IMG/VR virus record: IMGVR_UViG_3300013233_000093 | Coordinates: 1 to 64,000 of that record | Reading direction: 5' to 3' (one strand) | DNA length: 64,000 nucleotides | The notes under the pieces: generated by a model | Database searches by the model: none | What the model saw: only the letters and a program-made list of their open reading frames with translations | What the model was told of the DNA's origin: nothing | Position numbers and translations under genes: made by a program | In this document: positions 1 through 40,991 of the stretch, piece after piece | How positions within the stretch are numbered: the first letter of the stretch is position 1 | Layout of the letters: each line of letters starts with the position of its first letter

Positions 1-281
1 CCTGTGGGTGCCGGAGGCACCGGAGATGCTATCAGTGGCGACAGCGAAGCTGGGTCGCCCTGACGGATGTCAGATAACCCAACACGTGGACTCGCTGGCG
101 CTCCCCCACCTGTGGGTGGAGCCGCATCACCTGTGGGTGCCGGAGGCACCGGAGATGCTATCAGTGGCGACAGCGAAGCTGGGTCGCCCTGACGGATGTC
201 AGATAACCCAACACGTGGACTCGCTGGCGCTCCCCCACCTGTGGGTGGGGACACATCACCTGTGGGTGCCGGAGGCACCGG
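1..281. repeat. Tandem 129-bp (43-codon) Pro/Gly/Ala-rich repeat inside the tape-measure gene
   Basis: cctgtgggtgccggaggcaccgg recurs at 1, 130 and 259; first two units nearly identical. Confidence 0.95.
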
Positions 282-3200
282 GGGCGTGCCAGACGGTGTA
301 CCGGGAGGCGTTGGAGTTCTTCCTGGAACCGGAGGCGCTCCTTGTGCGCCACCAGCCAGCCATGCAATCATGTCCGTCTGCATGCGCCAAGCACCACCCA
401 CTATACCAGTTCCTCTACGCAAGACAGAAGAACTGTTCCCGCGCATAATACGACCTAAGGGATTTGTAAGACGCGTTCCTAAGCTGGCAGTTAACACCTT
501 CTTACCGTTTTTCTTTAGGAGTCCATCACGCACCTCCGCTGCGGTAAGGATTACATCGCCCTCACGGTTAAGAACCTCGCCGTCGATTTGCTTGTGCTTC
601 TTGATGGTCTTGCCTGTCCTACGACTTATATAGTCCCCACGTTTTAACCCACGCTTTGTCAGTCGCGGAGAATCTTCACCCGGAACATACACGTCGCCCC
701 GGTTAATAAATCCTTTCACAGATCTACCCACCATCTTAGCGATTGCCCATGCAGGTTTTAATAACAAGTGTTTTGCTATTTTACCCTGGAGTTTCCAAGA
801 GGCCTTGGTGAGTTTGATGAAGTTTCTAGCCACGTTCCGAAGCTTACCGGTACGGTTGCCAAACAGACCGGTTTGTAAATCCAATGCAGACACCACCTCC
901 TCACCTTTAGCGTCTATTACAGGGCCGTCAATGTCGCCGACCTTATGGATGACGTTACCAGTAGCTTTGTCGAAGTAACGACCTAAGCGCATGCCTCTCG
1001 CAGTCATCACAGGCGCCTTTTGCCGGGCAACGTAGATGTCTTGCGTGAAGAGATCTTTTACACCTCCACCAACTGCCTTACGAACGACGGATAGCGGATT
1101 ACGGATCAGTTTAGATAACCCGTTATCCTCGCCCAGGTATTGCCCGATGAAATCGGCTACCTTGTTAGCGCCCTGCTTTACAACGTTGTTGGTGTTCACT
1201 GCGTTATTAATGGTGTCGCCTACTGAGTTTGTGGTTTTGTTTCCACTTACTACATCGCCTGCTACGCGTGAAACCTTGTTGTAATACGAAGACACCATGT
1301 CAGCGGCATCGCCTGCACCAGACCGCATGCCACGTAAGACGCCAGATGAATCTCCAGTAATTGTACCAGACGCATCGCCTGCCTCCGCACCACTGGACTG
1401 TGATATGGATTGCAGTAAGACATGTTCTGTTGCAAAGTTACCGTCGATCGCTTTGACGACTTCTTCTAACCCCACGCGCATCGCCGATACAGCGGGGTCT
1501 TCTTCACCTGAAGTGATCTTAGCCTGACTTACATCGAGCGGTGCTTTGGACGTCGGTGCTAATACACCTGCGTTGTTCTGCATGTCGATTACAACCGGCG
1601 ATACCGCACCGAGTGTGTTTATGTCTGGCGTACCCGCGATGATCGTTTCAGTGGCTTGTAGGAGCGCAACTTTTAACGCCGACGCGGTACTTTGCTTGGT
1701 GGTTTCACTGGTGTTCTCCGTGACGGCATCGCTGGTGTTTTGTGATGGCCGCTCTGTGCCGTCCCAGGATATAGACGCTATCAGTGCGCTTAATGACTCT
1801 GGCAGATTGGTTACCTGACCATCTTCTTCCGGCTTGGTTGCAGCTGCTTCCTTAGGCTTAGGCAATTCACTTGTCTCACCTAACTGCACACCTTCTAACG
1901 CCGAAGCTAGGCCGTGACTGGTAGACGATGCATCGGTATACTTACTCACATCAGTATCGACTGTCTCTGTCCTAGACTCCACGAGGTTGATAATCGCATT
2001 TAGCGCATTATTAGCCACGTTGGCAGTCGAAGATTTGACACTCTTTACTGACTGGTCAAGTCCGATGGACTCACTGGCGTTACTCATCCCGTTTGTAAAT
2101 ACAGACTTTATGTCTGCGAAGGATACGGGACGTGAAGACATGTCACGGTACTTTGCATTAGTAACATCCACATTACTGAGTATGTCACTTCTTGCAGTGT
2201 CACCTGCAAACGCATAGTTAGCATACCCACCAACGGATTCTGATTTATCCGTTTCCTTAGACTTAAACACTTCTGACAATGTCGATACAGGGGACGAGTT
2301 AACGATTCCCTTAGATATGGCATTGTACCGATTAGTTATAGTCTCTCCTGGCGCTACCTGTAGTGCGATTAGCTCGTCGTTTACGGCTGACACAGTTGAC
2401 TCTACGTTACTTATCACAGAAGTAAGCGTTTCGTCCAGACGTTTACCCACCTTGGTATCCATCACTGTAGACGCTGCATCGCTGGTTGCGTACCTAGCAG
2501 TTTTAAGTGTGTCCTGCAAGGACGTCGAGGCTTTGGAATTCACAGCGCTGTTCACTAGGTCGTGTAGACTGCGTGATGTGGTGAGTGCCTTGTCTGTCTC
2601 GTTATGCACGGACGCCAGCGTTTCGTTTATGTTACTGTTGGAGGCGGAAGAATCGTCCGTACTTGTAGACGCACTCGCGTCGTCGGCAACACGTCCAATG
2701 GTATCGAAGATAGACGTTGTCTTATTCTCATCGGTGGACGATGTTAAATCGTTTACGACTGACGAAATAGACTTATACGCATCAGTGGACTTGGCCTTTG
2801 TCTGAAGCTTTGATACCGAGTTGCTAACGCTATCATACTTACGTGATACTGAGTCATGCAGGTCCGTAACCCGACTGCTGTTCATCACGTCGTTTAATAC
2901 GTTACCCACGCCGCGTTTTGTCGCGGGCGGTGTCTCTTCTCCTGCATGGTTGCCAGGTGGTTGGGTAGGGAGGTCTTCGGAGGCACCTGCGTTACCGTCA
3001 ACACTAGATATGTCTGCGTCTGTCTTGCCCGGTGTGCGAGTGAAGGTTTCGTCTATGGCAGTGGTTAACTCACTCCACGCCGTCGATAAATTGGCCTTGG
3101 CCTTTGTCCTGGCTTCTTCGATTACCAGCTTAGCATACGCCCGCGCCTCCGATTTACTTACATGCTCCAGATTTTCCTCCCCATATCGGACAGCGCTGGT

Positions 3201-7048: not shown

Positions 7049-8689
7049 ATGAACAACAAAGACATCGCGTTTAACATTAAGATCATGAGTCCAGACAGAG
7101 AGTCGATACGCGGTATGTTGCCTGTATCTACTATGGACATGTACGACAATAACACGGGGGATTACCATCCACAAGGGCTGTACTCTAACGTCATCTTTGG
7201 TCGTGTGGGTACTGACTTACGGAACGAGTCTCACGGGTTTATTAACCTGCGGACGAGTATACTGCATCCTAAGTTGTTTGACGAGCTTATACGACTTAAA
7301 GGACTTTATCGAGCTGTGATGTCTGGCAGTGAGTTTGCAGTGTGGGATAAAAAGAAGCGTGACTTTATAAAGTCTGATATGCTTGACGGTGAAACTGGAT
7401 ATGCGTTTTTTAAGTCGCATTTTGAAGAGCTTAATCTGGTGAAGAACAAGTCGGTGCAGCGAGCTGCTCGCATCGATCTGTTAAACAAATACCGCAAGTC
7501 TGCTTATGCGGATTTCCAAGTCGTGGCACCCGCGGGTCTAAGGGATGCAAAAACTGACGAGACGGGAAGAACCATCGAGGTGGATGTCAACAAAACGTAT
7601 CGTCGTATTATGGCATTAGCCAGCACGATACCTGAAACACTGATCGACAGTGAAGACACCACGTTAGACCGTACTCGTTATAGTCTACAGTTGGCCATTA
7701 ACGAGTTGTGGAAATACCACGTTATGTTAATCGGTGGTAAGAACGGTTTTCTCGAAGCTAAGTTTGGCAGTCGTAAGGTGGAGTATGGCACGACGAACGT
7801 CATGTCTAGTATGGATCCTGCTAGTGCTGATATGAATGGCGCTACGGCCATGGACGTCACCAATACACAAATAGGCTTGCATCAGTTCCTGAAGTCCACC
7901 GAACCTATGGCGGTGGGTTACTACATCCCACACGGGATCGCTGAGGACGTGTACATCAATGCAGACGGAGACGTGGAACTTATCGAGCCTAAGACGCTTA
8001 CGCCTGTGTCTGTAAAGTTGAGCGAGAAGGAACGTACTCTGTGGGGAACCGAGGAAGGCTTGTCTACGTTGATAAACAACTTCGACGTGGTGGACATCCG
8101 GCACGAACCCGTGATGATCGCAGGCAAGTACCTTGCCATGATCTATCGAGATCGTAAGAACTTCAAAGTCATCCGGGATATGGAATCTGTGCCGGATCGT
8201 ATAAACCGTGCGTACATTAAACCGTTGACATGGGCTGAGTTCTTTTACATCACTGCGATGTCTTACGAGAATAAAGCACGGGCTTATGTGAACCGTTATC
8301 CTATTGTCGGGACGGGGTCGATCTACTTCAGTAAGATGTATTTGAAAACCACCATCAAAGGCGTGGTGTTGCGTGAGATGACCGATGACTTCTTAGAGAG
8401 TACGACGAATCCAGATTACCCTGAGTTTCCAGACACGGAGAATAAGGGTTCGTTCATGGACACCACTGCCCCGCATGTCAGCCAGCTGGCGAACCTTAAG
8501 GGCGATTACGATGGCGATAGGAGTTCTACGACTGCGGTAACATCCGACGAGGCAGTAAAGGAAGTGGACGACAAGATAAATGATCCTGCCACGCACCTAA
8601 CGCCTGACGGTGGTTTAGTGCAGCCGTCGGACAGTGACATCATTGACTGGGTATTTAAGAACTTCACGGGGTTTAAAGACTATGCTTAA
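7049..8689 (+). CDS. Virion RNA polymerase beta' subunit, catalytic part (phiKZ gp180-like)
   Basis: HPQGLYSNVIFG, catalytic GDYDGD (DxDGD) motif, NRYPI, APAGLRD; ~550 aa, upstream of large beta subunit. Confidence 0.92.
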   Translation: MNNKDIAFNIKIMSPDRESIRGMLPVSTMDMYDNNTGDYHPQGLYSNVIFGRVGTDLRNESHGFINLRTSILHPKLFDELIRLKGLYRAVMSGSEFAVWDKKKRDFIKSDMLDGETGYAFFKSHFEELNLVKNKSVQRAARIDLLNKYRKSAYADFQVVAPAGLRDAKTDETGRTIEVDVNKTYRRIMALASTIPETLIDSEDTTLDRTRYSLQLAINELWKYHVMLIGGKNGFLEAKFGSRKVEYGTTNVMSSMDPASADMNGATAMDVTNTQIGLHQFLKSTEPMAVGYYIPHGIAEDVYINADGDVELIEPKTLTPVSVKLSEKERTLWGTEEGLSTLINNFDVVDIRHEPVMIAGKYLAMIYRDRKNFKVIRDMESVPDRINRAYIKPLTWAEFFYITAMSYENKARAYVNRYPIVGTGSIYFSKMYLKTTIKGVVLREMTDDFLESTTNPDYPEFPDTENKGSFMDTTAPHVSQLANLKGDYDGDRSSTTAVTSDEAVKEVDDKINDPATHLTPDGGLVQPSDSDIIDWVFKNFTGFKDYA

Positions 8690-11600
8690 AATCGATCAGT
8701 ACATGGTAAAATGGGTAGCACGTAAGCGAGAGCAGATGGCAACCAAGCCATTACTCGCACACGGTGATTTGGACTTACCTGTATATACCACAATACACCA
8801 TGCGTCAGACGCAGCTAACGATTACGGCATTCGTAAATCGCATGTGCTCTTACAAGCCACTCTTCGTTACGTACGAGTCTACCATGAAATCCATGGGATG
8901 TCTGAGCACGGTAATCCCGCTAACCTAACCTACAACGTGGAGCGTACTAAATCGACGTTCTTTAAAGCACGGGGACGTACGTTTAAAAAGGTCACAGATG
9001 TCGCACGTGCCAGTAAGGACAAGAACGGGATCTTTGTGGCGGACTATTCGTTACTGCAAAACATGTTTCGTTATTCTGTTTCTAAGTATGCGGACTTGTA
9101 TGAAACGCGAAACGTCATGGATACGATATGGCGTAACGCTAATAAGTTCGGCGCACATCGCACACAGTTCATCACCTTTAAGATCCCCAAAGTCTTACCT
9201 GACTTTAACCGCATGCGCGTACTGTCAGAAGCCAAGGACGGTTTGATTGTAAGTGAAGTAAGTAAACCCATTACGTGGAACTTGATCGACTTATGGCGAC
9301 GTCTAAACGAGTTTGACTTGCCCGTATCACAAGAAGTGGCTGAGAACACCATCCTGGTCTTCCACAGCGAAGTGAAGATGGCACAGGTACGTCTGAGCGA
9401 TTTGTTTGAATGGATGGCTGACAGCGAGGCACAGACCTTAAAATCGTTTTATGCGATGTTGGTTAAAGTGCATGCTACGCGCGCGGTGACCGAAGTAGCG
9501 ACTGAAGAGGAAGACGACGATGACACGGTTACTGTGGATAAGGACCTTGATTACGAAGGAGGTAGTCAGATCTACAGCAAGGCATTAGAGATGGTGGAAG
9601 CCGGTAAGATGTCGGCTGCGCAAGCTGTGCGATTTAAGAAAATGGGCACGTCCTATAAGACCATTGAATCGTTTTCAGGCAACGGTACTCTGGAAGAAGA
9701 TCTGGATACCGATGTGGCGAGTATGGCGATGGGAAGTGATATTCCCATTATGAATAAAAAGCCCTTTATCCTAGATGACTCCATGCACTACTCGTCTATT
9801 GACGTTATGGATAAAGTCTATCGTGAGAACTACTTGCACAAACACGTGTCTCAGATGGTCGTCGGATTACAGACAGCGGGTGCTGTTGTAAAGGACATCA
9901 AGAAACAAGTACACGTAGACGCGATGAATCGTATCGAAAGATACACGGTTAAAATTGTGCCTGTGGTGGGTAAAGAATCCACACTGCACTTCCAACTGCC
10001 TGTGGTGGACGAAGACGGTGCGTTTTACGTCAGTGGAATAAAGCGCAGGTTAGATCCACAGAGAGTTGATTTGCCCATTCGTAAAGCGGGCTCAGATAAA
10101 GTCGCACTCACCTCTTATGCAGGCAAGGCCTTTGTTATTAGAAGTCCTAATGCTAATGCAAACGTAAGTCGCTGGATCACCAAGTTGATTGCTAACGATG
10201 CAATGAGTGGTCCTGGTAAGAAGATTACAAACTTGGTTATGAACAACAGTCAGTTGTCTCAGGCTAAGACACCGCGATTATACAGTGCGGTCGGAATGGG
10301 GGTTGGTTCCTTTACTGCAAACGGCGTGGACTTTAGTTTCCTCTATGACGAACGTGAAGCTGTGTATGGTAAGATCGGTAAGATAGAGCGCGACGGTCTG
10401 GTGGTGTGCGGTAAACGTAAATCTGACGGCGCTTTGGTTACAATGGACGAGGGTGGTTATCTTAACATAGGAGCTACGAAGCTTGGTATGTTGCCTCAGT
10501 TTATAAACTCCGACTGGCCTACCCCTCCTGTGGAATATGCCATGTTGCAAACGTATGGCAAGAAGGTACCTTTGGCACTAGCACTTGCGTCTAAAATGGG
10601 ACTCCGTAAACTGCTTAGACTGATTAAAGCGAAATCAAGATGGTTGGATCCAGGAGTACGTTTGGACTTACAACCCGGTGAGTTTCGTATTACATTTAAA
10701 GACTCCTCTTTGATCGTAGACGGCAGTGATCCAAAGGTACGACTTATCATGGGCGGCTTTACTGCCGTTAACCGTGTGACTAAGTTGTATCGTGCTAAGG
10801 AGTTCAACAAACCCGGTATCTATGGCACTGTGCTGGAAGACCTTAAGATCGGCAGACATGTGCTGGCTGAGATTACATTGATGTATGACATGTTCGTCGA
10901 TCCCATCACTCGCGATATCTTACGTGAGATGAAAGAACCTGAAGTATTCCAAGACCTGTTGCTGCGTAGTGCAGAACTGTTAATGGACGATCAATGGGTA
11001 GACGAGATGGACACACGGTTTATGCGATCACGTGGATACGAACGCTTCGCAGGATTTGTCTATAAGCGTCTTATGGATGCAGTTCGTGAACAGCGTAAGA
11101 ATCCACAGGCTGCTAACTCGGTGATCTCTATGCCGCATCAGGCAGTGATGTCGGACATTATTTCGGACGAGTCGGTAGTTCAAGTGGAGGAGTCCAATCC
11201 CATTCATGCGCTTAAGGAACGAGAAGCCATTACCTTTTCAGGTCAAGGTGGTCGTAGTGCTCAGACCATGGTACAGAAGAGCCGTGTGTTTCACGCTAAC
11301 GACGTTGGGTTCATTTCCGAGTCTGGTCCTGATTCGGCTAAAGTGGGCATCCGGTCTCATCGTGTACCTAATGCCAAGTACAATAGTATCTTTGGCACCA
11401 CGGATCGTTTCGACTATGATAAAGACGGGGTGTCTTCTGCGTTCTCCTCTGCAGCACTGATCTCTCCCGGGGCGTCACACAACGATCCAAAGCGTATTGC
11501 GCTTGGCGATATCCAGTGGTCGTCCATGGTTAGTGCTACCGGTGCTATTATTGTACCGTTGCGTACTGGGTATGAAATGGTAATCGCGGATCGTGTAGGT

Positions 11601-12974
11601 GATCTATTTGCGGTATCTGCTAGGGAAGACGGGGTTGTGTCTGCGGTAGAGAAAGACGCGGTTATGGTTCGGTATAAATCCATAGCTCAATTTGTACCCG
11701 GCGATGTCTATAAGTCAGGCGATGTTGTGCTTGATTGTAACGTCATACGTGGTGAGAAGTACGGCAAACAAGCCACCTTTATGCAGACCGATAAAATAAC
11801 TAAGTTACCTAAAGTCTCCAGTAAAGAGTTGATTGGCGTTAAGCCACAACACGCCGCCATTGTCATTGCAACCGATGACGGATATACAGTGATCTCTAAC
11901 GCCGCTGTAGTGGCCTTGGCAAAGCAAGAGAAGCGTTCTGTGTTCCCGGTGTTTATCCTAGCACCCGCGACCATAAAACGCTTAAACGGCAAGCGTGCTA
12001 AATCTGCTAAAGACGTGTTCGATGCAGAGGCACTCGCCGGAGTTGAGATTGGTTATGAGTTAGGCGTTCGCCACGGCAAAGCGGCTGGTGCGATCATCCC
12101 GCATTCTAAAGTAACGAATCTTAAGAAGGGCGATAAGTTTGTCAAGGGCGATATACTCGCCTGGAACGAAAACTACTTTGCACGGGATTACCTTAACCCT
12201 GGAGGCGTAACGCTTAAGATGGGTGTGCTGGAAAGAACACTTCTTATCGAGACCAAAGAGACCTACGAGGATAGTTCCGCTATCTCCAGGGATCTTGGAC
12301 ATGCGTTACGCACACCCACTGCCAAGGAGAAAACAATCTTTGTTAACTTCGATCAGGTGATTCATAACTTGTTGCCTATAGGTAGTGACGTAGAGCCCTC
12401 CACTATTTTATGCGCCATTGAGGAGTCTGCCACGGCGGACGTACTGGACGATGAGGAAGGTTTGTCTGGGTTAACACGGCTTGCGGCTAGTGTGCCTAAG
12501 GCAGGGTTTAAGGGTAAGATCATGTCAATAGACATGACCTACATGGGCGACATAGCGGACATGTCGCCTTCACTTGCAGGTATTGTCAAAGCAGATGCTA
12601 AGGCACGACGTCGTAAACGTTCTGTACTGAAGGACAGTTCCATCGCACAGACTGCTGAGATTAAAGAGTCCGTGTTCTTTGGCGGGCAGCGCGTTACTGA
12701 GAATACACTGTCTATTGTAATTACAATGGATGTTGAGAACATCGCTGAGTCGGGAGACAAGATTGTCTTTGATGCGTCTCTTAAGTCTATCATATCTGAG
12801 ATGATCGAGGGCAGTGACCATACTGAGGACGGCCAGCCCATTCACGCACGCACAAGTTATCGCGGCGTCGCGGCACGTACCGTGTTATCGCCTGAGTTAT
12901 CAGGCCCAACCAACACCGCATTGTTAGAAATCACTAAGCTTGCGGCTGACGTATATTTTAAAGGGAGTAAGTAA
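8682..12974 (+). CDS. Virion RNA polymerase beta subunit (phiKZ gp178-like)
   Basis: DLPIRK, VALTSYAGK, RGYERFAG, GFISESGPDSAKVG, TYEDSSAIS, GDKIVF; probable start MLKIDQY overlaps upstream stop. Confidence 0.92.
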   Translation: MLKIDQYMVKWVARKREQMATKPLLAHGDLDLPVYTTIHHASDAANDYGIRKSHVLLQATLRYVRVYHEIHGMSEHGNPANLTYNVERTKSTFFKARGRTFKKVTDVARASKDKNGIFVADYSLLQNMFRYSVSKYADLYETRNVMDTIWRNANKFGAHRTQFITFKIPKVLPDFNRMRVLSEAKDGLIVSEVSKPITWNLIDLWRRLNEFDLPVSQEVAENTILVFHSEVKMAQVRLSDLFEWMADSEAQTLKSFYAMLVKVHATRAVTEVATEEEDDDDTVTVDKDLDYEGGSQIYSKALEMVEAGKMSAAQAVRFKKMGTSYKTIESFSGNGTLEEDLDTDVASMAMGSDIPIMNKKPFILDDSMHYSSIDVMDKVYRENYLHKHVSQMVVGLQTAGAVVKDIKKQVHVDAMNRIERYTVKIVPVVGKESTLHFQLPVVDEDGAFYVSGIKRRLDPQRVDLPIRKAGSDKVALTSYAGKAFVIRSPNANANVSRWITKLIANDAMSGPGKKITNLVMNNSQLSQAKTPRLYSAVGMGVGSFTANGVDFSFLYDEREAVYGKIGKIERDGLVVCGKRKSDGALVTMDEGGYLNIGATKLGMLPQFINSDWPTPPVEYAMLQTYGKKVPLALALASKMGLRKLLRLIKAKSRWLDPGVRLDLQPGEFRITFKDSSLIVDGSDPKVRLIMGGFTAVNRVTKLYRAKEFNKPGIYGTVLEDLKIGRHVLAEITLMYDMFVDPITRDILREMKEPEVFQDLLLRSAELLMDDQWVDEMDTRFMRSRGYERFAGFVYKRLMDAVREQRKNPQAANSVISMPHQAVMSDIISDESVVQVEESNPIHALKEREAITFSGQGGRSAQTMVQKSRVFHANDVGFISESGPDSAKVGIRSHRVPNAKYNSIFGTTDRFDYDKDGVSSAFSSAALISPGASHNDPKRIALGDIQWSSMVSATGAIIVPLRTGYEMVIADRVGDLFAVSAREDGVVSAVEKDAVMVRYKSIAQFVPGDVYKSGDVVLDCNVIRGEKYGKQATFMQTDKITKLPKVSSKELIGVKPQHAAIVIATDDGYTVISNAAVVALAKQEKRSVFPVFILAPATIKRLNGKRAKSAKDVFDAEALAGVEIGYELGVRHGKAAGAIIPHSKVTNLKKGDKFVKGDILAWNENYFARDYLNPGGVTLKMGVLERTLLIETKETYEDSSAISRDLGHALRTPTAKEKTIFVNFDQVIHNLLPIGSDVEPSTILCAIEESATADVLDDEEGLSGLTRLAASVPKAGFKGKIMSIDMTYMGDIADMSPSLAGIVKADAKARRRKRSVLKDSSIAQTAEIKESVFFGGQRVTENTLSIVITMDVENIAESGDKIVFDASLKSIISEMIEGSDHTEDGQPIHARTSYRGVAARTVLSPELSGPTNTALLEITKLAADVYFKGSK

Positions 12975-13165
12975 TGATCGGATCTGACGATTTAGAATCA
13001 CATCGTACTGTTTCAAACGCGATTATGCTTGGCGATGCCATCATTCGCACACTGGGCTTGGACGACGGGGCGATCGGTAACGACACCATGACTGCCGAGT
13101 TGCTGGCGGACGAGTTGCATTACAAAGTAGAACGCGTCACCAGAGGCAAGCATCATGTTGAGTAA
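12974..13165 (+). CDS. Small hypothetical protein
   Basis: TAATG coupling to vRNAP beta stop; overlaps next start. Confidence 0.6.
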   Translation: MIGSDDLESHRTVSNAIMLGDAIIRTLGLDDGAIGNDTMTAELLADELHYKVERVTRGKHHVE

Positions 13166-14606
13166 AACACAAGCAGACAACTCCGTTAACGCCGCAGAGC
13201 GCGTGACGTATTCTGGTCTACTGGCTGAACCCAAGAGCACCACGCCTCTTGAGTTTATTCGAAACCAGACTGTGGTCATCCACGACGATGTGGATAGCCG
13301 TGATGAATTAGCAGGCATTCTCATTGCGGATACAAACCGCCCTCTGGCGCTGATCGACAAAGTGTCAGCCGACGGCATTAGCGTCTACCCACACGCCAAC
13401 GCGTTACGTGAGATGGCCGGCATACACGCAAAACGTCTGGGTAATTCCTTTGCGTATGCTAAAAACACCATCGCCCCTGTTTGTAAAGCCGTTGTGAAAC
13501 GATGTGAAGAAGAGATCAACGGCGGCGTCTGGAAAGACATTAACGTTGTAACCAATGAAATCCCAAAGGTCTATCGCAGCCCTTTGTTATCCACGCTGGC
13601 ACGCAGCATTTTACGTCCAGAGACTAACTCTTCTGACACAAGTCAGTTTAAAGACATCGAAGGACTGAATGCAGTTGTCGGTGATTTGACACTGAGCATG
13701 GTGCGCGATGTAATGCATCTCGGAGTAGCTGAGTTCGATGAGCAGTTAGACGCGTTACTGGCCGTACCTGATGTTGCGGAGATTGCAAAACACCCAAGCA
13801 ATTTATTGAACGGGTATTTCAAGGACGGTGTAGATGGCTGGAATCTGTTTCATTCACACGGTGCACTGTTATCCTATTTGTTCGCTACTGGATTACTAAA
13901 CGGCAACGGCGGGTTCTTTGATAACCAAGCTGCCACTCTAGATGAAGTGGGTTTGCTAAAGACCATCGCACGCAGAGCGGGTTGGGCTATCCAACAACGA
14001 CTGGCGGTTATTGCATCAAGCGATGAGCACGGTAAGATTATCCTTAAGCGGGATAACTACAATGTCTTCGTTAATGCAAGCGCGTATAACGCATGGCTTA
14101 AAGAAGGCGGCAGTGTTGAAGGGTTGCTGGGGTATTGTTTACAGCACAGCAGTGACATGTCTACTAGCAGTGCAGACATGGCGTTGAAAACGGCACCGGA
14201 TCACTGGACACGGGTGTATAAACAACATCGCATGCGCGAAAGTGCAGTAGAACAAGTCAAGCTTAATCGCGTCATTGACAAAGTTGTCTATCGCGGCATT
14301 GTAGACGCATTGCAAGAAGAGCATGGCGCGGAAAGCGCTGTCTGTCATATCGCCATCGACAAGGCAGCCAAGCAGCTTAAGGAAACGCGTTACTACTCAG
14401 CAATGGACTTAAACAATTACGTCCTGCAGTGCGTGTGCAAGATCATGTCAAATGACAAGAACGATTCCTACGAGATCTTAATGGGCATTCGCCAGTATCT
14501 GGATGAGAATCCTGAAGGTACTATGACACAGGCTAAACGCGTGGCTGCTACTAAGCTGGTCTGTAAATGGTTGGTAAGTCAAATCGACATCAGAAAACAA
14601 GGGTAA
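13155..14606 (+). CDS. Conserved phiKZ-family protein (gp177-like)
   Basis: 483-aa ORF; synteny between vRNAP beta and gp176/gp175-like genes. Confidence 0.65.
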   Translation: MLSKTQADNSVNAAERVTYSGLLAEPKSTTPLEFIRNQTVVIHDDVDSRDELAGILIADTNRPLALIDKVSADGISVYPHANALREMAGIHAKRLGNSFAYAKNTIAPVCKAVVKRCEEEINGGVWKDINVVTNEIPKVYRSPLLSTLARSILRPETNSSDTSQFKDIEGLNAVVGDLTLSMVRDVMHLGVAEFDEQLDALLAVPDVAEIAKHPSNLLNGYFKDGVDGWNLFHSHGALLSYLFATGLLNGNGGFFDNQAATLDEVGLLKTIARRAGWAIQQRLAVIASSDEHGKIILKRDNYNVFVNASAYNAWLKEGGSVEGLLGYCLQHSSDMSTSSADMALKTAPDHWTRVYKQHRMRESAVEQVKLNRVIDKVVYRGIVDALQEEHGAESAVCHIAIDKAAKQLKETRYYSAMDLNNYVLQCVCKIMSNDKNDSYEILMGIRQYLDENPEGTMTQAKRVAATKLVCKWLVSQIDIRKQG

Positions 14607-14612
14607 CTTATT

Positions 14613-15329
14613 ATGGACGTAGACGGTCTGGTACGTGATCCTGCCTATATACACAGCGCGTTAGTGGAAAACGGTGACTTGTTGCTGGCTAAGAAAGATT
14701 TGGTCATTCATATCCCAAAACACTGGACTGAAGGTGCGTTGGGCAGTATGGAAAGTAAGGTAAACGCCCTGGCCAACTACGGCATAATTGTGGACGGTAA
14801 GTACGCATGTAGTATCGCGTGTTGTATAATGACCTTTACCCCTGAAACCGTGAACACCATTACTGTGGACGAGTTACCTTATCTTGAGATGGTGTTTAGT
14901 GCAGGCACTCCTATACTAACGATTCCTGTTATTAAGACGGCGCCATTGCTATACGAGATCAACAACGAGTTTGATAACAAGGGTAAGAAACCTTGGTATA
15001 TGAACGAGTCCGATCTTGCACGGTTGTTTGATACAGCCGAGTATCATGCGGGCGCTGGTATTGGCGCAGATAGGGCGATCACTGAAATGATGGTGGCGTC
15101 TCGTATGCGTATGCCTGAAGATCGTGCTAAGTACTACAAGGAGGCGTATACTACTGAGAAGCAGTATGCAGAGAACCTGCCCGAGATCATTGCAGGGCGA
15201 TCTGTTGGGTACGGTGCGACTAACACAAGTGCGCGGCTATTGGGTTCTTATATGTCAGAAGGCATGACGTCTGCGTTGGTTAACCCGACTGAGAAGCTGG
15301 AGAAAGTAGAGGCCTTACTAATTAAATAG
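14613..15329 (+). CDS. Conserved phiKZ-family protein (gp176-like, possibly vRNAP-associated)
   Basis: RDPAYIH, GKKPWYM, YGATNT, SALVNPTEKLEKVEALL; immediately upstream of prohead protease. Confidence 0.7.
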   Translation: MDVDGLVRDPAYIHSALVENGDLLLAKKDLVIHIPKHWTEGALGSMESKVNALANYGIIVDGKYACSIACCIMTFTPETVNTITVDELPYLEMVFSAGTPILTIPVIKTAPLLYEINNEFDNKGKKPWYMNESDLARLFDTAEYHAGAGIGADRAITEMMVASRMRMPEDRAKYYKEAYTTEKQYAENLPEIIAGRSVGYGATNTSARLLGSYMSEGMTSALVNPTEKLEKVEALLIK

Positions 15330-15340
15330 GAGATGGTGGC

Positions 15341-16123
15341 GTGAATAACGTTGAGCCAGTGGTGTATAAATGCCTTGCTATCCACGACGATGCAAAGCAG
15401 GGTAAGCTTAAGAAAGACAGTAACGGTTATCGATCCATTGTGTTAGGTGCCTTTGACATCGGATCACGTGACGGTGAAGTGTATCGACTTAACAAAGTCG
15501 TGCGTGACGCATTTGAATCCAGTCACTCCATGCAACGGGCTATCAATAACGGTCAGCTGTATGGGGAGCAGGGACATCCTACTATGGAGCCTGGCATGAC
15601 CATGGAGGGTTTCCTAAGTCGTGTGGTGACCATCCGTGAATCCGAGCATGCGTTGAAGATAGCAGAAGCCAAGTTGGTGCCTGCTAAAGATGAAAACGGT
15701 AAGCCGTTTATCTTGACGATGGGTCGTGTCCGTGGTGCAGGTAAATACATGGAAGGCGTAGAAGCCGACTTTGATGACCCCGAAACCAACAGTGCGGTGA
15801 GTATCCGGACTTTGACTAAAATGCCACGGTATCGCGACGGTTACATGATGCGCGATGTGACTGAGTTGGTCACGTGGGATAAGGTCGGTGAACAAGCTGC
15901 AGTGCATGCTGATAAGTATCATAGTGTGGGCATGCAGTCTCTTGGTACTGATGTGGTGTTTGACCCTAATCAAATGTCCCGTGATAACTTTGAAGTGTTA
16001 AAGGTGGACGACGTTGTGGGCATGCAGTCTGGACATAGCGATGTTAGTCGTGTGCTTACTGAGTTAGGATGGGTGCACCTAGTCCGTCCAAAGGTTTTAT
16101 CTACGCAGCAGTTTGAGCTATAG
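15341..16123 (+). CDS. Prohead (head maturation) protease, phiKZ gp175-like
   Basis: LYGEQGHP (His), AVSIRT (Ser), VTWD (Asp) motifs; GTG start with AGGAG RBS. Confidence 0.88.
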   Translation: MNNVEPVVYKCLAIHDDAKQGKLKKDSNGYRSIVLGAFDIGSRDGEVYRLNKVVRDAFESSHSMQRAINNGQLYGEQGHPTMEPGMTMEGFLSRVVTIRESEHALKIAEAKLVPAKDENGKPFILTMGRVRGAGKYMEGVEADFDDPETNSAVSIRTLTKMPRYRDGYMMRDVTELVTWDKVGEQAAVHADKYHSVGMQSLGTDVVFDPNQMSRDNFEVLKVDDVVGMQSGHSDVSRVLTELGWVHLVRPKVLSTQQFEL

Positions 16124-19633: not shown

Positions 19634-19675
19634 ATTCAAAACTATATCACTATTATGATAACGTACTTTGTTATC
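19634..19675 (+). promoter_or_regulatory. Early promoter + stem-loop cassette
   Basis: ATTCAAAACTATATCACTATTATG followed by GATAAC-gtacttt-GTTATC. Confidence 0.85.
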
Positions 19676-35197: not shown

Positions 35198-36763
35198 TCA
35201 TTGGTAATGGCCAAATGTTATTATCCGTAAAGACAAATAGACCAAAGCGGATACGCGAGCTGGCGCGGTAATCGATTTCGATTTTGTACGCAAGGGGGAT
35301 TTCTCGACGATCCTTTCCATTTCATTCTTCACCAGTGTGATGTCTGGATTAGATAACTGAGACGATCTGAATAAGTTCCGTAACGTCGCAGTAAGTTGTA
35401 TCATAGTATTACCATTTTTACCGTTCTTGGCATAGTAGTCTACAACGAACCTAACGAGTGTATTGGACAACTCACGCACATCAAAGTCTTTCTTCTCATC
35501 TACGTTCTCTGAAATGAAATGCATCAGCGATAAGAAGTGTCGTTCTTCTGCAGTCGCTACGATACGCATGGTCTGTTCCACCAACGCTTCTTTGATTAAC
35601 GCTCTTGGGTTACGGATGACTTGTGTCATCTGCTCGCCGAGTGCTTTTGCGTTGTTGATGGATTCTCGTATAACCCGTTCACCTTCCACAGTGATCATAG
35701 AGGACTCTAGAAGCACGCGTGCGTCACGTTCTGCGAAGTCGTAATAAAGTATGTTCAGCTTTACCACGACCTTACGTATGCGTGTCTGTACGTCTGAGAT
35801 GCAGTACACAAGACCTTCATCATCTTTGAACTCATTGACTGACTTATAGTGGATGGACTCAGGAGAAGCAAGTACATCCGCTCTGTGGTTAATTAGTCCA
35901 CCCCAAGTGCCGTACTTCTTAAGTGACGACTTCTTAGAGAGCGATTCATACACAGCCATAGCGATGGCTTCTTGTGCAGGATAACGCCATGATCTCCAGA
36001 TAATAGATGTGATAAACTTAAGGTTTAACATCTTCCATAAAGACGTAATACCCACGATCTTCTCTTTATCTGTCAAAGGTGAATTGTGTATCCGATGGAC
36101 TAGGTAAAGATATGATGCGTTTACCGCATTAGAGGTTACTGCAAATGCCGGGTTGATTTCTTCTTGGTCTTTATAGTCGACCTGTAAGTCTTCCCAATCA
36201 TCCAGCAGTAATACTTCCTCGATCCATTTCACCTCATCAATGGTATCCGCATAGCGGATACGGTGTACTCCGATTAAGTTAGAACCTAAGAATCCAATGT
36301 GTTCTTCGTTCTTTGTCTCGAACGCACGCACGTAGTAGATGATCCGTTTTACCAGATCTCGATCCACCTTTACATTCGCGTCGCTGAAATACCAATCGAA
36401 GACTTCCTTCATGGAGTTAAACCTGCCCTTTGGTTTCTTCTTCCAGGCCGCTTTCTTCGAGTCGTTATGATACTCATCTCGAGTCTGTCCATCGAGCACG
36501 TCCCTCGATTGTACACCAGCGACAACGTCTTTTTTTATTGCAGGTAACTGAATGGCAGTGGCTCCGTAGCCCGTGACAAACTCTACCTCGTGGTCTTTTG
36601 TTTCAAACGGGATCTTTACCACATGTAGTGTGTCCTCGCCTTGCGTACGTGGTAAGGTGTCTATAACGTCTCCTGCGACGTCTATGGTCATTTTAGTACC
36701 TAAGGGCACTGTGGTCACCGGAGATCCGCTTAGGTACACGTATGCCCTTTTGTACTTAAACAT
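35198..36763 (-). CDS. Conserved virion/head protein (phiKZ gp32-like)
   Basis: KNEEHIGFLGSNLIGVHRIRY, LSKKSSLKKYGTW, ISDVQTRIR; probable start MFKYKR with AAAGGA RBS. Confidence 0.75.
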   Translation of the reverse strand: MFKYKRAYVYLSGSPVTTVPLGTKMTIDVAGDVIDTLPRTQGEDTLHVVKIPFETKDHEVEFVTGYGATAIQLPAIKKDVVAGVQSRDVLDGQTRDEYHNDSKKAAWKKKPKGRFNSMKEVFDWYFSDANVKVDRDLVKRIIYYVRAFETKNEEHIGFLGSNLIGVHRIRYADTIDEVKWIEEVLLLDDWEDLQVDYKDQEEINPAFAVTSNAVNASYLYLVHRIHNSPLTDKEKIVGITSLWKMLNLKFITSIIWRSWRYPAQEAIAMAVYESLSKKSSLKKYGTWGGLINHRADVLASPESIHYKSVNEFKDDEGLVYCISDVQTRIRKVVVKLNILYYDFAERDARVLLESSMITVEGERVIRESINNAKALGEQMTQVIRNPRALIKEALVEQTMRIVATAEERHFLSLMHFISENVDEKKDFDVRELSNTLVRFVVDYYAKNGKNGNTMIQLTATLRNLFRSSQLSNPDITLVKNEMERIVEKSPLRTKSKSITAPARVSALVYLSLRIITFGHYQ

Positions 36764-36764
36764 A

Positions 36765-38366
36765 TTACTTCCTTTGTTCTGACGCACTGACCGCTCTTAC
36801 TATACCCGCCGCCAGACTAATATACGCGGTGGACGCTGTAAGATACTCCTTCAAAATAATACTTACAAACTTTAACGCCTTGGACATGTTTTTATACTCG
36901 TTGCCCATAGACGCCACAATAGAATTAATATATTTCGAATGAGGCTCGTCACGGTACTTTCCAGTGATACCGTCAAACGTCTTTAATCCGTCCTTTATGT
37001 CCTGAAGCTTCGCTCTTTGCGCCGGTCTAAACAGCTTAGCGGTGTCGGCTGCGCGCATGTGCATTTCATACATAGCCTTAGTGGCTGTGTTAAAGTCTAC
37101 AATGTCTATATACTCTAACACGGTTGGCTGTGATGGTTTGGTGACCGACAACGTAAAACTGGGCATGCCGAGATCGTCGGTACTTATTGTAATCTCAAAA
37201 ACCCGCCCGCCGCCTGTGTCTGGAGATATTAAACTTCCAGATGCGTCATCTGGATCAAGATCGGTAATGCCGTCGTATAACCCAAGCATCGCCTGTAAGT
37301 ACCCATGAGGCATATTAAAGATTTCGTACACCCACTCAGCGTTATTCAGTAACGCGCGTACCAACCGGCGCCTATCACGCATTGCGTGTGAGTCCTCGTC
37401 GTGTAGACCCGGTAAACTCGTGTTCATTGTCTCGAACAATTCCAAGATTTCGTCGATGGACACGGGCTCTATTTTCTTTATGGCGGTGTTTATATTATCA
37501 ATAACATCGCTCATTTTAGACCGATCCATGCCACCGCTGATGATGATTGCATGGTCCTCTATCATATCGACGTCTTCCACGTAGGCTTTGCGGATGTCAT
37601 TGGTGATCTTTATACGAGTGAACCCACTACGTTGCTTACGCAGTTCTTTAATCCTTGCCTCGTCCCTTGCAGCAGCCTGCGCTGCTGCTTCCTTATCGGC
37701 CGCTGCGATGCGCGCGGCTTCCTTTTTATTAGCGGCTTCTTGCTCGACGGTTGCGTTAAACCTTGCTGCGGCGGCGTCTAACCTTTCGCGTTCGCGCTTG
37801 TTGAATTCCTCCGCTTCTTCGACGTCCTTCTTTATTTTAGATAGCCGTGCATCATCTCGAGTATTATTCTCAAGACGCGCTGCTTCTAACATCTCAGGAG
37901 TGACTTCGCTTACTGCCTTTTCTATATCCACGCCTTTCTCTTCTAGCTCTGCTACGGCTAAAGCAGTCTCTACGGTGGCCTTATCTTCCTTGGCCATTTC
38001 CTTACCGATCACGCCTCCCACAGGAGTGGGTGTATCCTGATAAGTAGCGCCAGGAGTATCAGGGTTAGTACTACCCTTACCTCCGGTAAGCCACTCCCAT
38101 AGCTTTTTAAGACCGCTTACCACCGCCATGACTGCACGGACGATCAAACGCCAAACAGCTTTAAAAGCACGTCCTATAAACTGCATACCAGCTACAGTGT
38201 CTGCGCCTATGGAGTCGCCAGACACCCACTCCACTCTATCACCACACATACCCATCATACCAGCAATAGTATCAGACTCCTCATAGATCTTAATAACACG
38301 ACCACTAAGCACCCCATCCAACACCAACTCAGCATACTCCAACTCACTCACCACACGACTATCCAT
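36765..38366 (-). CDS. Putative internal head (ejection) protein with propeptide and coiled coil
   Basis: Acidic N-terminus, then amphipathic AFKAVWRLIVRAV...KKLWEWL typical of phiKZ-family inner head proteins; A/E/K/R-rich coiled coil. Confidence 0.6.
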   Translation of the reverse strand: MDSRVVSELEYAELVLDGVLSGRVIKIYEESDTIAGMMGMCGDRVEWVSGDSIGADTVAGMQFIGRAFKAVWRLIVRAVMAVVSGLKKLWEWLTGGKGSTNPDTPGATYQDTPTPVGGVIGKEMAKEDKATVETALAVAELEEKGVDIEKAVSEVTPEMLEAARLENNTRDDARLSKIKKDVEEAEEFNKRERERLDAAAARFNATVEQEAANKKEAARIAAADKEAAAQAAARDEARIKELRKQRSGFTRIKITNDIRKAYVEDVDMIEDHAIIISGGMDRSKMSDVIDNINTAIKKIEPVSIDEILELFETMNTSLPGLHDEDSHAMRDRRRLVRALLNNAEWVYEIFNMPHGYLQAMLGLYDGITDLDPDDASGSLISPDTGGGRVFEITISTDDLGMPSFTLSVTKPSQPTVLEYIDIVDFNTATKAMYEMHMRAADTAKLFRPAQRAKLQDIKDGLKTFDGITGKYRDEPHSKYINSIVASMGNEYKNMSKALKFVSIILKEYLTASTAYISLAAGIVRAVSASEQRK

Positions 38367-39092: not shown

Positions 39093-40991
39093 TTAATCGT
39101 CATCATCGTCCCATTCCAAACCAGCGTTGGATTGGTATTCAGTCACACGGGTTTCAAAGAAATTTTTTTCTTTCTTTAAAAGTGCCTGTTCGTCTAACCA
39201 TTCACATGCATTCGTTGCACCAGGAAAGGGTTCTTCCAAATGCAATGCACGTGCTCTTCGATTGGCCATGTAGTGGAACTGTGCAATGTGTTGATCCTTG
39301 GTGTAACCCAACATCGGTTTCTTAAGGATGTACCCAGCGTAATCACGTTCTACTTGTTCTGCCTCATCCCACATATCGCGGACTTCCTGTGGATCTAGAA
39401 CCACACCTTCTTCTTTGATGATCTGGTTTGCTACACGGATACCGAACGAAGCATGCATGACTTCATCCCGCATAATGTATTGCAACTGCTCACCAGTACC
39501 TTTCATAAGACCTCTACGCTGCAATGCGAAGATCGGAGTGAAACCGTTATAGAACCAACATCCCTCGAAGATGGCTGCGAAGAAGATGTACGACATGACA
39601 AACTCACGCAGGTGATCTGGATTGGTTAAGTCCAGTGTTTTAGACATGGAAGCTGCAAGTCGTTTTTCTGCCATCCGGATCTTAGCGTTGATCTCAGGCA
39701 CCACCAGATAACGATTATAGATCTCATCCTGATCTAACCCAATGGTCTCAATGCAATGTTGGTACGTCCATGTGTTACCGGACACAACCACTTTGCCGTC
39801 AAGACGAGTGATGATCACTCGGGAAGGTACACCTACGCTGTAGACATTACCATTGTACGCTTCTAGTGATTTCTGCAGCCGCAAGCCATTCACGCACGTG
39901 CGATGTTCAAAATGCACAGACGTGCCGTTCGGACGATCGTCTACATGCATGACAGTACCACACAGTGGTGCTAACGCACTGAAGGTTTCCTGCACACGTT
40001 TAAAGTCCCCGTACAGCACCCGACCCCAAGTCGTTAGTTCAGATAAAAGCTCCGTGCACTGACTGTAGTTTAAGGCAGGCAGGTACGCGCGCTCCAGCGA
40101 TTCCAACACGCATTGTAAAATCGTTGCGAAGTTTACAATTTTAAACCATGCACTGTTGGCATCGTCGCAGCCCATCTCATATTCGATATCACTCGTCTTA
40201 CAAAGCCACACCAATCTACTGATGGATCTTGGTTCGTGAAGAATCACATCGTGACCTTCAATGCTGGTGACGTGCGCTAGCGTGGCCACGGTCAGTCTCG
40301 TTTCGTTGTCGAGACTTACCCTGCGATTGTTGTTAAACGTTCTGGCACTGACGGGGAACCCGTGCTTTCCAAGCTCCAACTCGCCCGCTTTAGCAAGCGT
40401 CAGTTCAGTATCGTCAAAGTCGAAGTACGCACAGTTATGATTCGGAGTGACCTTAGTGAGATAATTGTCACCCGTGATGACTACAAGATTGCCCTCGTAG
40501 TGATCTTTGGTGACACCAAGATGGTTCACAAACGTGACTTTCCCGTTAGCATTAAAGTCCGCTACGGTATCAGTATCCGCAAGGTCTCTAAAGTCCACCC
40601 AACCACGACCGGTCAAGACTTCTGTGCCTTCCACGTAACAATGCAATGCTTCTTCGAACACCTGACGTGCTTGGTAAAGTTGCAGCTCCGGTGCAGTCAT
40701 GCGCTCCATGACGGCTAAACCGATGTTACGCATTGCCATAATGTCAGATGTAGTGAGGTACGCTAAGACGTTTTCGTACACATGACGCTCATTGTCGCTC
40801 AGTTTATGCCGAAAGTCATGCACGTCCTGCGTCATGTTCACGTCTAACGGCACCCAGTGGTTCTTATTGGCGTTGGTAAAATACGTAAACGCCCATGGAT
40901 ACTTGAAGGGCGCTAACTGGTTTATATTACCCTTGCCGTTTACAACTCTCTTGTCGGATGCACGTACACCCGATTTCTTTTCTTCGCTCAT
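39093..40991 (-). CDS. nrdB: Ribonucleotide reductase class I beta subunit (intein-containing)
   Basis: PFKYPWA, NHWVP, EEALH, EGCWFYNGF, YIMRDEVMH, KEKNFFETRVTEYQ; 343 aa after removing intein. Confidence 0.95.
   Translation of the reverse strand: MSEEKKSGVRASDKRVVNGKGNINQLAPFKYPWAFTYFTNANKNHWVPLDVNMTQDVHDFRHKLSDNERHVYENVLAYLTTSDIMAMRNIGLAVMERMTAPELQLYQARQVFEEALHCYVEGTEVLTGRGWVDFRDLADTDTVADFNANGKVTFVNHLGVTKDHYEGNLVVITGDNYLTKVTPNHNCAYFDFDDTELTLAKAGELELGKHGFPVSARTFNNNRRVSLDNETRLTVATLAHVTSIEGHDVILHEPRSISRLVWLCKTSDIEYEMGCDDANSAWFKIVNFATILQCVLESLERAYLPALNYSQCTELLSELTTWGRVLYGDFKRVQETFSALAPLCGTVMHVDDRPNGTSVHFEHRTCVNGLRLQKSLEAYNGNVYSVGVPSRVIITRLDGKVVVSGNTWTYQHCIETIGLDQDEIYNRYLVVPEINAKIRMAEKRLAASMSKTLDLTNPDHLREFVMSYIFFAAIFEGCWFYNGFTPIFALQRRGLMKGTGEQLQYIMRDEVMHASFGIRVANQIIKEEGVVLDPQEVRDMWDEAEQVERDYAGYILKKPMLGYTKDQHIAQFHYMANRRARALHLEEPFPGATNACEWLDEQALLKKEKNFFETRVTEYQSNAGLEWDDDDD
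39774..40640 (-). mobile_element. Intein (289 aa) in nrdB
   Basis: Begins CYVEGTEVLT...GW, has VTPNH block B, ends VYSVGVPS...VVVSGN before +1 Thr; interrupts EEALH|TWTY. Confidence 0.92.

Follow-up and report, generated by a model that had tools for sequence, protein, structure and literature searches.

A giant phage related to phiKZ in which the head protease and head proteins seem to have changed together from glutamate to glutamine cleavage sites

INTRODUCTION

Cleavage after glutamate has been treated as a constant of prohead maturation from T4 to the phiKZ-like giant phages (PMC5694885). The locus examined here raises the question of whether this rule can change. In an uncultured phiKZ-like giant phage, the tail of the prohead protease carries Gln where the sites of self-cleavage would be expected, and similar Gln motifs occur in putative head proteins. 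The original prediction, made from the sequence alone, was that enzyme and substrates had undergone a concerted switch of P1 specificity from Glu to Gln. Here, this prediction was compared with homologous proteins and with genes from the rest of the phage contig. The replacement of Glu by Gln was confirmed at homologous sites, and the prediction of a concerted switch is supported, although it rests on sequence inference, as the phage is known only from a metagenome and no cleavage has been observed.

RESULTS AND DISCUSSION

The repeated motif and the protease that carries it

The analyzed window was the first 64 kb (64,000 nucleotides) of IMG/VR contig IMGVR_UViG_3300013233_000093, which is 222,906 bp long. 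The last 239 nt of the contig (L101:9630-9868; here, L numbers denote loci and P numbers denote proteins) repeat the first 239 nt (window 1-239). This terminal overlap indicates that the assembly is circular or terminally redundant and that the genome is probably complete. The phage is a divergent phiKZ-like (Chimalliviridae-type) jumbo phage, with no DNA match in the phage collection and protein identities to known phages of about 25-36%.

In the window, the 15-mer gtgggcatgcagtct was found at 15926-15940 and again at 16016-16030, both in frame in the plus-strand open reading frame (ORF) 15341-16123, which encodes 260 aa. The two copies encode V196-G-M-Q199↓S, within KYHSVGMQS, and V226-G-M-Q229↓S (the arrow marks the P1-P1' boundary). 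From residue frequencies, VGMQS is expected about 0.01 times in the 44.5k residues examined. Given identical peptides, identical codons have a P of about 0.008 from the codon usage of this phage, and one site may have been copied onto the other by conversion or duplication.

The 260-aa protein is a prohead (head maturation) protease of the Peptidase_S80 (phiKZ gp175-type) family. It matched PF20034 with 167.3 bits against a cutoff of 23.4 (E = 3.9e-49), covering profile positions 1-226 of 229, and phrog_3014 (head maturation protease) at 6.7e-51. An AlphaFold model built on 147 homologues had a mean pLDDT of 81.6, with the tail at low confidence. Foldseek against PDB gave nothing significant, but a wider structural search found T4 gp21 (5JBL; Z, 12.4; 137 residues; rmsd, 2.5) as the best match to the model, followed at lower scores by herpesvirus assemblins (VZV, HCMV, and KSHV proteases; Z, 7.1, 5.6, and 3.6). 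His79, Ser154, and Asp180 were invariant in 147 aligned family members; their assignment as catalytic residues rests on published mutagenesis of gp175 and gp245. Nothing suggests an inactive enzyme. The catalytic domain spans about residues 20-190 and the C-terminal tail residues 190-260.

The genomic context is also that of a phiKZ-like prohead protease. Upstream of the gene lie virion RNA polymerase beta/beta' pieces (7049-8689 and 8634-12974) and two gp176/gp177-like head genes (13155-14606 and 14613-15329), with matches to phrog_2926 (virion structural protein) and phrog_3841, and the order matches that beside the phiKZ-type gp175. The window also holds an SbcC-like gene, the tail tube and sheath, the terminase, a gp32-like gene, ribonucleotide reductase, and the PhuZ tubulin.

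The tail motifs occupy conserved cleavage-site columns

To determine whether the Gln motifs are homologous to known cleavage sites, relatives of the protease were collected. A word-indexed protein search found only the protease itself, whereas an exhaustive HMMER search found 657 relatives, of which the best 150 representatives were aligned. The family tail has a fixed architecture. Site 1 is K[YFW]xxP[SAG][LM]E↓S, and after a variable linker of about 30 residues, site 2 is [VIL][GSA]xE↓S, followed by RVLTxLGW (RVLTELGW in this protein). Glu occupies P1 of site 1 in 143 of 150 representatives and P1 of site 2 in 144 of 150. A phiKZ-type gp175 shows ALE↓N and GFE↓C at these positions, and an SPN3US-type protease shows AQE↓S and ATE↓S in the same tail region, offset by a few alignment columns. 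As reported previously, SPN3US gp245 removes a 64-residue C-terminal propeptide by autocleavage (PMC10052503). Here, the predicted self-cleavage after Q199 would remove 61 residues. The tail (residues 190-260) has Gln at both sites and no [SAG]-x-E; the only such tripeptides in the whole protein are AFE59 and GVE141, in the folded domain.

Only three other representatives change both sites, namely P0081 with TMQ↓S and SMQ↓S, P0019 with AGLL↓S and AGML↓S, and P0003 with GMQ↓S and GLM↓S. P0081 derives from locus L079 (ERR7337947) and P0019 from L081 (SRR14574972). P0003 derives from a syntenic 204-kb phiKZ-like contig in the same metagenome (JGI 3300013233, Ga0172420_10000008; L080, L108, and L109) and represents a sister phage, with a protease 38% identical to the one studied here and, upstream, a 3738-aa protein with a Peptidase_M23 domain. 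In a quick tree, P0003 was placed beside the pair formed by this protease and P0002, its nearest protease (41% identity), with SH-aLRT values of 91 and 86. P0081 and P0019 fell elsewhere in the same weakly resolved group. Thus, independent origins of the non-Glu types were not shown, and a single origin is not excluded.

Capsid, portal, and other head proteins show the same replacement

The capsid and portal genes are not in the window and were therefore retrieved from the same contig. A profile search for the capsid gene missed this contig, because this capsid protein lacks the conserved TNTNRRxRG pattern. A 19-mer from a promoter-like repeat of the window was used instead to obtain further pieces of the contig, which were extended from a capsid fragment and from the gp128-like gene.

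The capsid gene lies at L105:8939-11119 (contig 122500-124683). The N-terminal 132 residues of its product contain SVAGMQ43↓S, NVAGLQ70↓Q, and VVPGLQ132↓A. In an alignment with 70 other distinct phiKZ-like capsid proteins, the first and third positions, which are the columns of phiKZ E54 and E163, are Glu in 70 of 70, while the second is less well conserved. The third is the column of the experimentally mapped phiKZ cut between Glu163 and Asn164 (PMC11297242). The nearest capsid relative (P0272, 35% identity) has AME↓S, GME↓A, and ALE↓S at the three positions. However, the capsid propeptide of this phage still contains IGME↓A, whose Glu is conserved in relatives, and GGME↓M, and Glu may therefore still be accepted. 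In the phiKZ group proper (L004-L017 and related loci), a conserved G-[SG]-[LI]-Q-V-F lies 10-15 residues upstream of the Glu163 maturation site and is probably unrelated to cleavage.

The portal gene (L106:7409-9823, minus strand of the locus) encodes YGMQ186↓S and VGTQ243↓S where 12 of 12 homologues have Glu, although one further portal site of homologues (site A) has no clear Gln counterpart. A 421-aa head protein (L097:6973-8238) has PGMQ86↓A where homologues in two cultured phages have AME↓S and ALE↓E, and in all three proteins a hydrophobic helix follows directly. One other site in this protein likewise has no clear Gln counterpart. In total, eight homologous positions in four protein families have a conserved Glu in relatives and Gln in this phage: two in the protease tail, three in the capsid propeptide, two in the portal, and one in the 421-aa protein family.

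Two further examples named in the original prediction lie in the window, and their positions were correct to within one codon. The minus-strand ORF 36765-38366 encodes a 533-aa protein with TVAGMQ62↓FIG at nt 38198-38178, directly before a hydrophobic or amphipathic stretch, and with an upstream TIAGMM38 motif. It is one of five paralogues (with L092:905-2506, L092:2601-4100, L095:5366-6814 on the minus strand, and L095:6855-8063 on the minus strand) scattered over at least three places in the genome. Their first 125 or so residues are highly conserved, including an invariant G-M-Q-F-I, whereas the remaining parts are only 28-62% identical. This resembles the shared leaders of T4 internal proteins and of SPN3US gp53 and gp54. 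The paralogues are predicted substrates, possibly inner-head or ejection-type proteins, but this function is a guess based on the leader and on the hydrophobic helix after the predicted cut. No PHROG match and no tblastn match in the phage collection were found.

The other example, the minus-strand ORF 35198-36787, encodes a phiKZ gp32-like protein (phrog_2921, 2.3e-90 over residues 121-527) with VVAGVQ93↓S at nt 36523-36506. The motif lies in an N-terminal extension of about 120 residues, about 30 residues before homology to phiKZ gp32 begins (the tblastn match to PHIKZ032 starts at residue 124). This possible substrate is the weakest case, since the extension has no counterpart in phiKZ gp32 and no evidence was found that gp32 homologues are processed. 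The homologue of the sister phage does carry TDGLQ20↓A in its own shorter extension.

Gln is enriched after the motif context

In 44,474 residues from 169 ORFs of this genome, the context [VAIT][VAPT]G[MLV] was followed by Gln 14 of 72 times, against 1.9 expected (7.4-fold; binomial P = 5e-9, or 1.7e-6 with paralogues collapsed). Glu followed 3 of 72 times, against 3.9 expected (0.8-fold), and thus was not enriched. Leu stood at 1.2-fold and Met at 2.2-fold, with two of the five Met counts being paralogue copies. The plain tripeptide G-[MLVI]-Q was not overrepresented overall (28 found, about what composition predicts); the signal lies in the context and in the position. Not every Gln motif was taken as a site. 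MVVGLQ413 in the virion RNA polymerase beta' piece was rejected because it is not conserved in the sister or in the P0019 contig and lies inside a folded region, and GTVGVQ116 in the SbcC-like protein was likewise taken as chance because that protein is not expected in the virion.

The nearest protease (P0002) has Glu at both tail sites and the nearest capsid protein (P0272) has Glu at all three sites, and both come from JGI sample 3300023500. Within this small clade, the residue in the enzyme's own sites and the residue in its substrates therefore go together.

A switch of P1 preference and its alternatives

Taken together, the S80 prohead protease of this phage most likely cleaves after Gln rather than after Glu. 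The predicted motif is [V/A/P/T] at P4, Gly at P3, Met or Leu (sometimes Val or Thr) at P2, Gln at P1, and usually Ser, Ala, or Phe at P1'. [quoted passage not shown] Glu to Gln requires one G-to-C change per site (GAR to CAR), and a plausible path is that the enzyme first tolerated both residues and the substrate sites followed. The simplest reading is that the S1 pocket now prefers the amide of Gln, but both cleavage at the Gln sites and remodeling of the pocket are inferred only. No single protease column separated the four non-Glu proteases from the rest. The only substitution here at a position invariant in all 143 Glu-type proteases is G186A; the sister has Asp there and the Glu-type P0002 keeps Gly, which makes it a candidate and no more. 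P132G, N42S, H106K, R67A, and F153V, the last next to the catalytic Ser, are further candidate changes at otherwise conserved positions.

A relaxed rather than switched specificity remains possible, though we consider it less likely. In this view, the S1 pocket accepts several long unbranched side chains (Gln, Glu, perhaps Met or Leu), recognition is carried mainly by P4-P2 ([V/A/P]-G-[M/L]), and Gln is merely the commonest P1. The retained GME tripeptides of the capsid propeptide, VAGME9 and TAGLE150 in two other proteins, the IAGMM and IAGML motifs upstream in the paralogue leaders, VPGLL64 and VAGLI96 in the 421-aa protein, and the Gln/Met and Leu/Leu tails of the sister protease and P0019 fit this view, and the change may be a broadening rather than a replacement. 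However, in the motif context only Gln was strongly enriched, and all eight homologous sites went to Gln and not to a mixture.

It is very unlikely that the protease is still Glu specific, with the Gln substitutions as dead sites and processing lost or moved to the remaining Glu sites. A few G-[ML]-E sites do remain, and the catalytic domain shows no obvious loss of a basic residue that would mark an altered S1 pocket. But without any [SAG]-x-E in the tail, self-maturation would be abolished, and the capsid maturation site, invariant in 70 of 70 relatives, would be lost. Moreover, decay would give mixed residues and eroded flanks, whereas P4-P2 and P1' are kept and P1 is uniformly Gln, including in the leader shared by the five divergent paralogues. 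Chance or compositional bias can be all but dismissed. Although the overall count of G-[MLVI]-Q agrees with composition, Gln is the fourth-rarest residue (2.6%) and yet is enriched after the motif context, and the sites coincide with conserved Glu columns in four families. Global recoding is excluded, since both CAG and CAA encode the P1 Gln across 15 sites, as the original prediction had noted for its examples, and Glu at conserved positions that are not cleavage sites is still Glu (protease E76 and E184 and capsid E161).

Comparison with characterized prohead proteases

By homology, the protein is a member of S80. It shares with phiKZ gp175 (the MEROPS S80 type enzyme) and the 201phi2-1 and SPN3US gp245 proteases the Pfam family, the gene neighborhood next to gp176/gp177-like head genes and virion RNA polymerase subunits, the tail with two cleavage motifs, the substrates (capsid protein, portal, and head proteins with long N-terminal propeptides), and the small or hydrophobic P4-P2 and Ser-rich P1'; SPN3US prefers Val at P4 and Ser at P1' (PMC10052503). 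By predicted specificity it differs, with Gln instead of Glu at P1 of the eight homologous sites and with P3 almost always Gly rather than Ser/Ala/Gly or Ala. All published S80 sites lie after Glu (PMC5694885, PMC10052503, PMC11297242). T4 gp21 (MEROPS S77) has the same role in degrading and trimming core and shell proteins inside the prohead, but it is only about 16% identical in sequence, its motif is (L/I)-x-E, and it is activated by N-terminal self-cleavage (PMC9958956) rather than by removal of a C-terminal tail. The herpesvirus assemblins share a role in capsid maturation, with no detectable sequence similarity. No report of a Gln-specific prohead protease was found in the literature that could be searched, which did not include many subscription papers.

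If the reading is right, this is a natural case in which an enzyme and at least ten substrate sites in five or more proteins changed their shared code together, and it offers a clean system for asking how a protease and its whole substrate set coevolve without loss of viability. Together with its 41%-identical relative P0002, which has Glu sites, this protease would give a matched pair for mapping the unknown S1 pocket of the S80/S77 fold. Annotation pipelines that predict mature capsid termini from (S/A/G)-x-E would fail on this lineage.

Phage protease activity is now known to trigger CBASS, in that CD-NTases are activated when a phage prohead protease cuts a bait loop (PMC12991175), and natural variation in P1 specificity would therefore be relevant to how phages evade protease-sensing defenses. 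As a speculation that we regard as unlikely but not excluded, the P1 switch may be an escape from such immunity. A phage whose protease no longer cuts after Glu would not trip baits tuned to x-x-E, at the cost of rewriting every one of its own sites by single G-to-C changes. The scattered Gln/Gln, Gln/Met, and Leu/Leu tail variants in one S80 subclade would then be footprints of an arms race over protease specificity.

Other features of the phage genome

The promoter-like repeat used to retrieve the contig is a 20-25-nt motif of the form TTCAAAACTATATCACTATTATGAT. It occurs ten times in the window, at 19635, 33902, 34635, 38385, 43712, 48902, 51285, 55236, 58498, and 59316, all on the plus strand. 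It is always intergenic and lies 25-120 nt upstream of a plus-strand ORF, including PhuZ. The 19-nt core occurs 20 times on this contig and only five times in the rest of IMG/VR, and it looks like a phage-specific promoter class for nonstructural genes. The ORF at the very start of the window (8-448, plus strand) contains the octapeptide RPDGCQIT twice, at about residues 17-24 and 60-67, which may be an internal repeat adjoining the terminal overlap. The ribonucleotide reductase small-subunit ORF (39093-40991, minus strand) encodes 632 aa, but family matches cover only residues 40-117 and 408-630, with about 290 unmatched residues between them. The gene of the sister phage encodes 359 aa. This suggests an intein or another inserted element.
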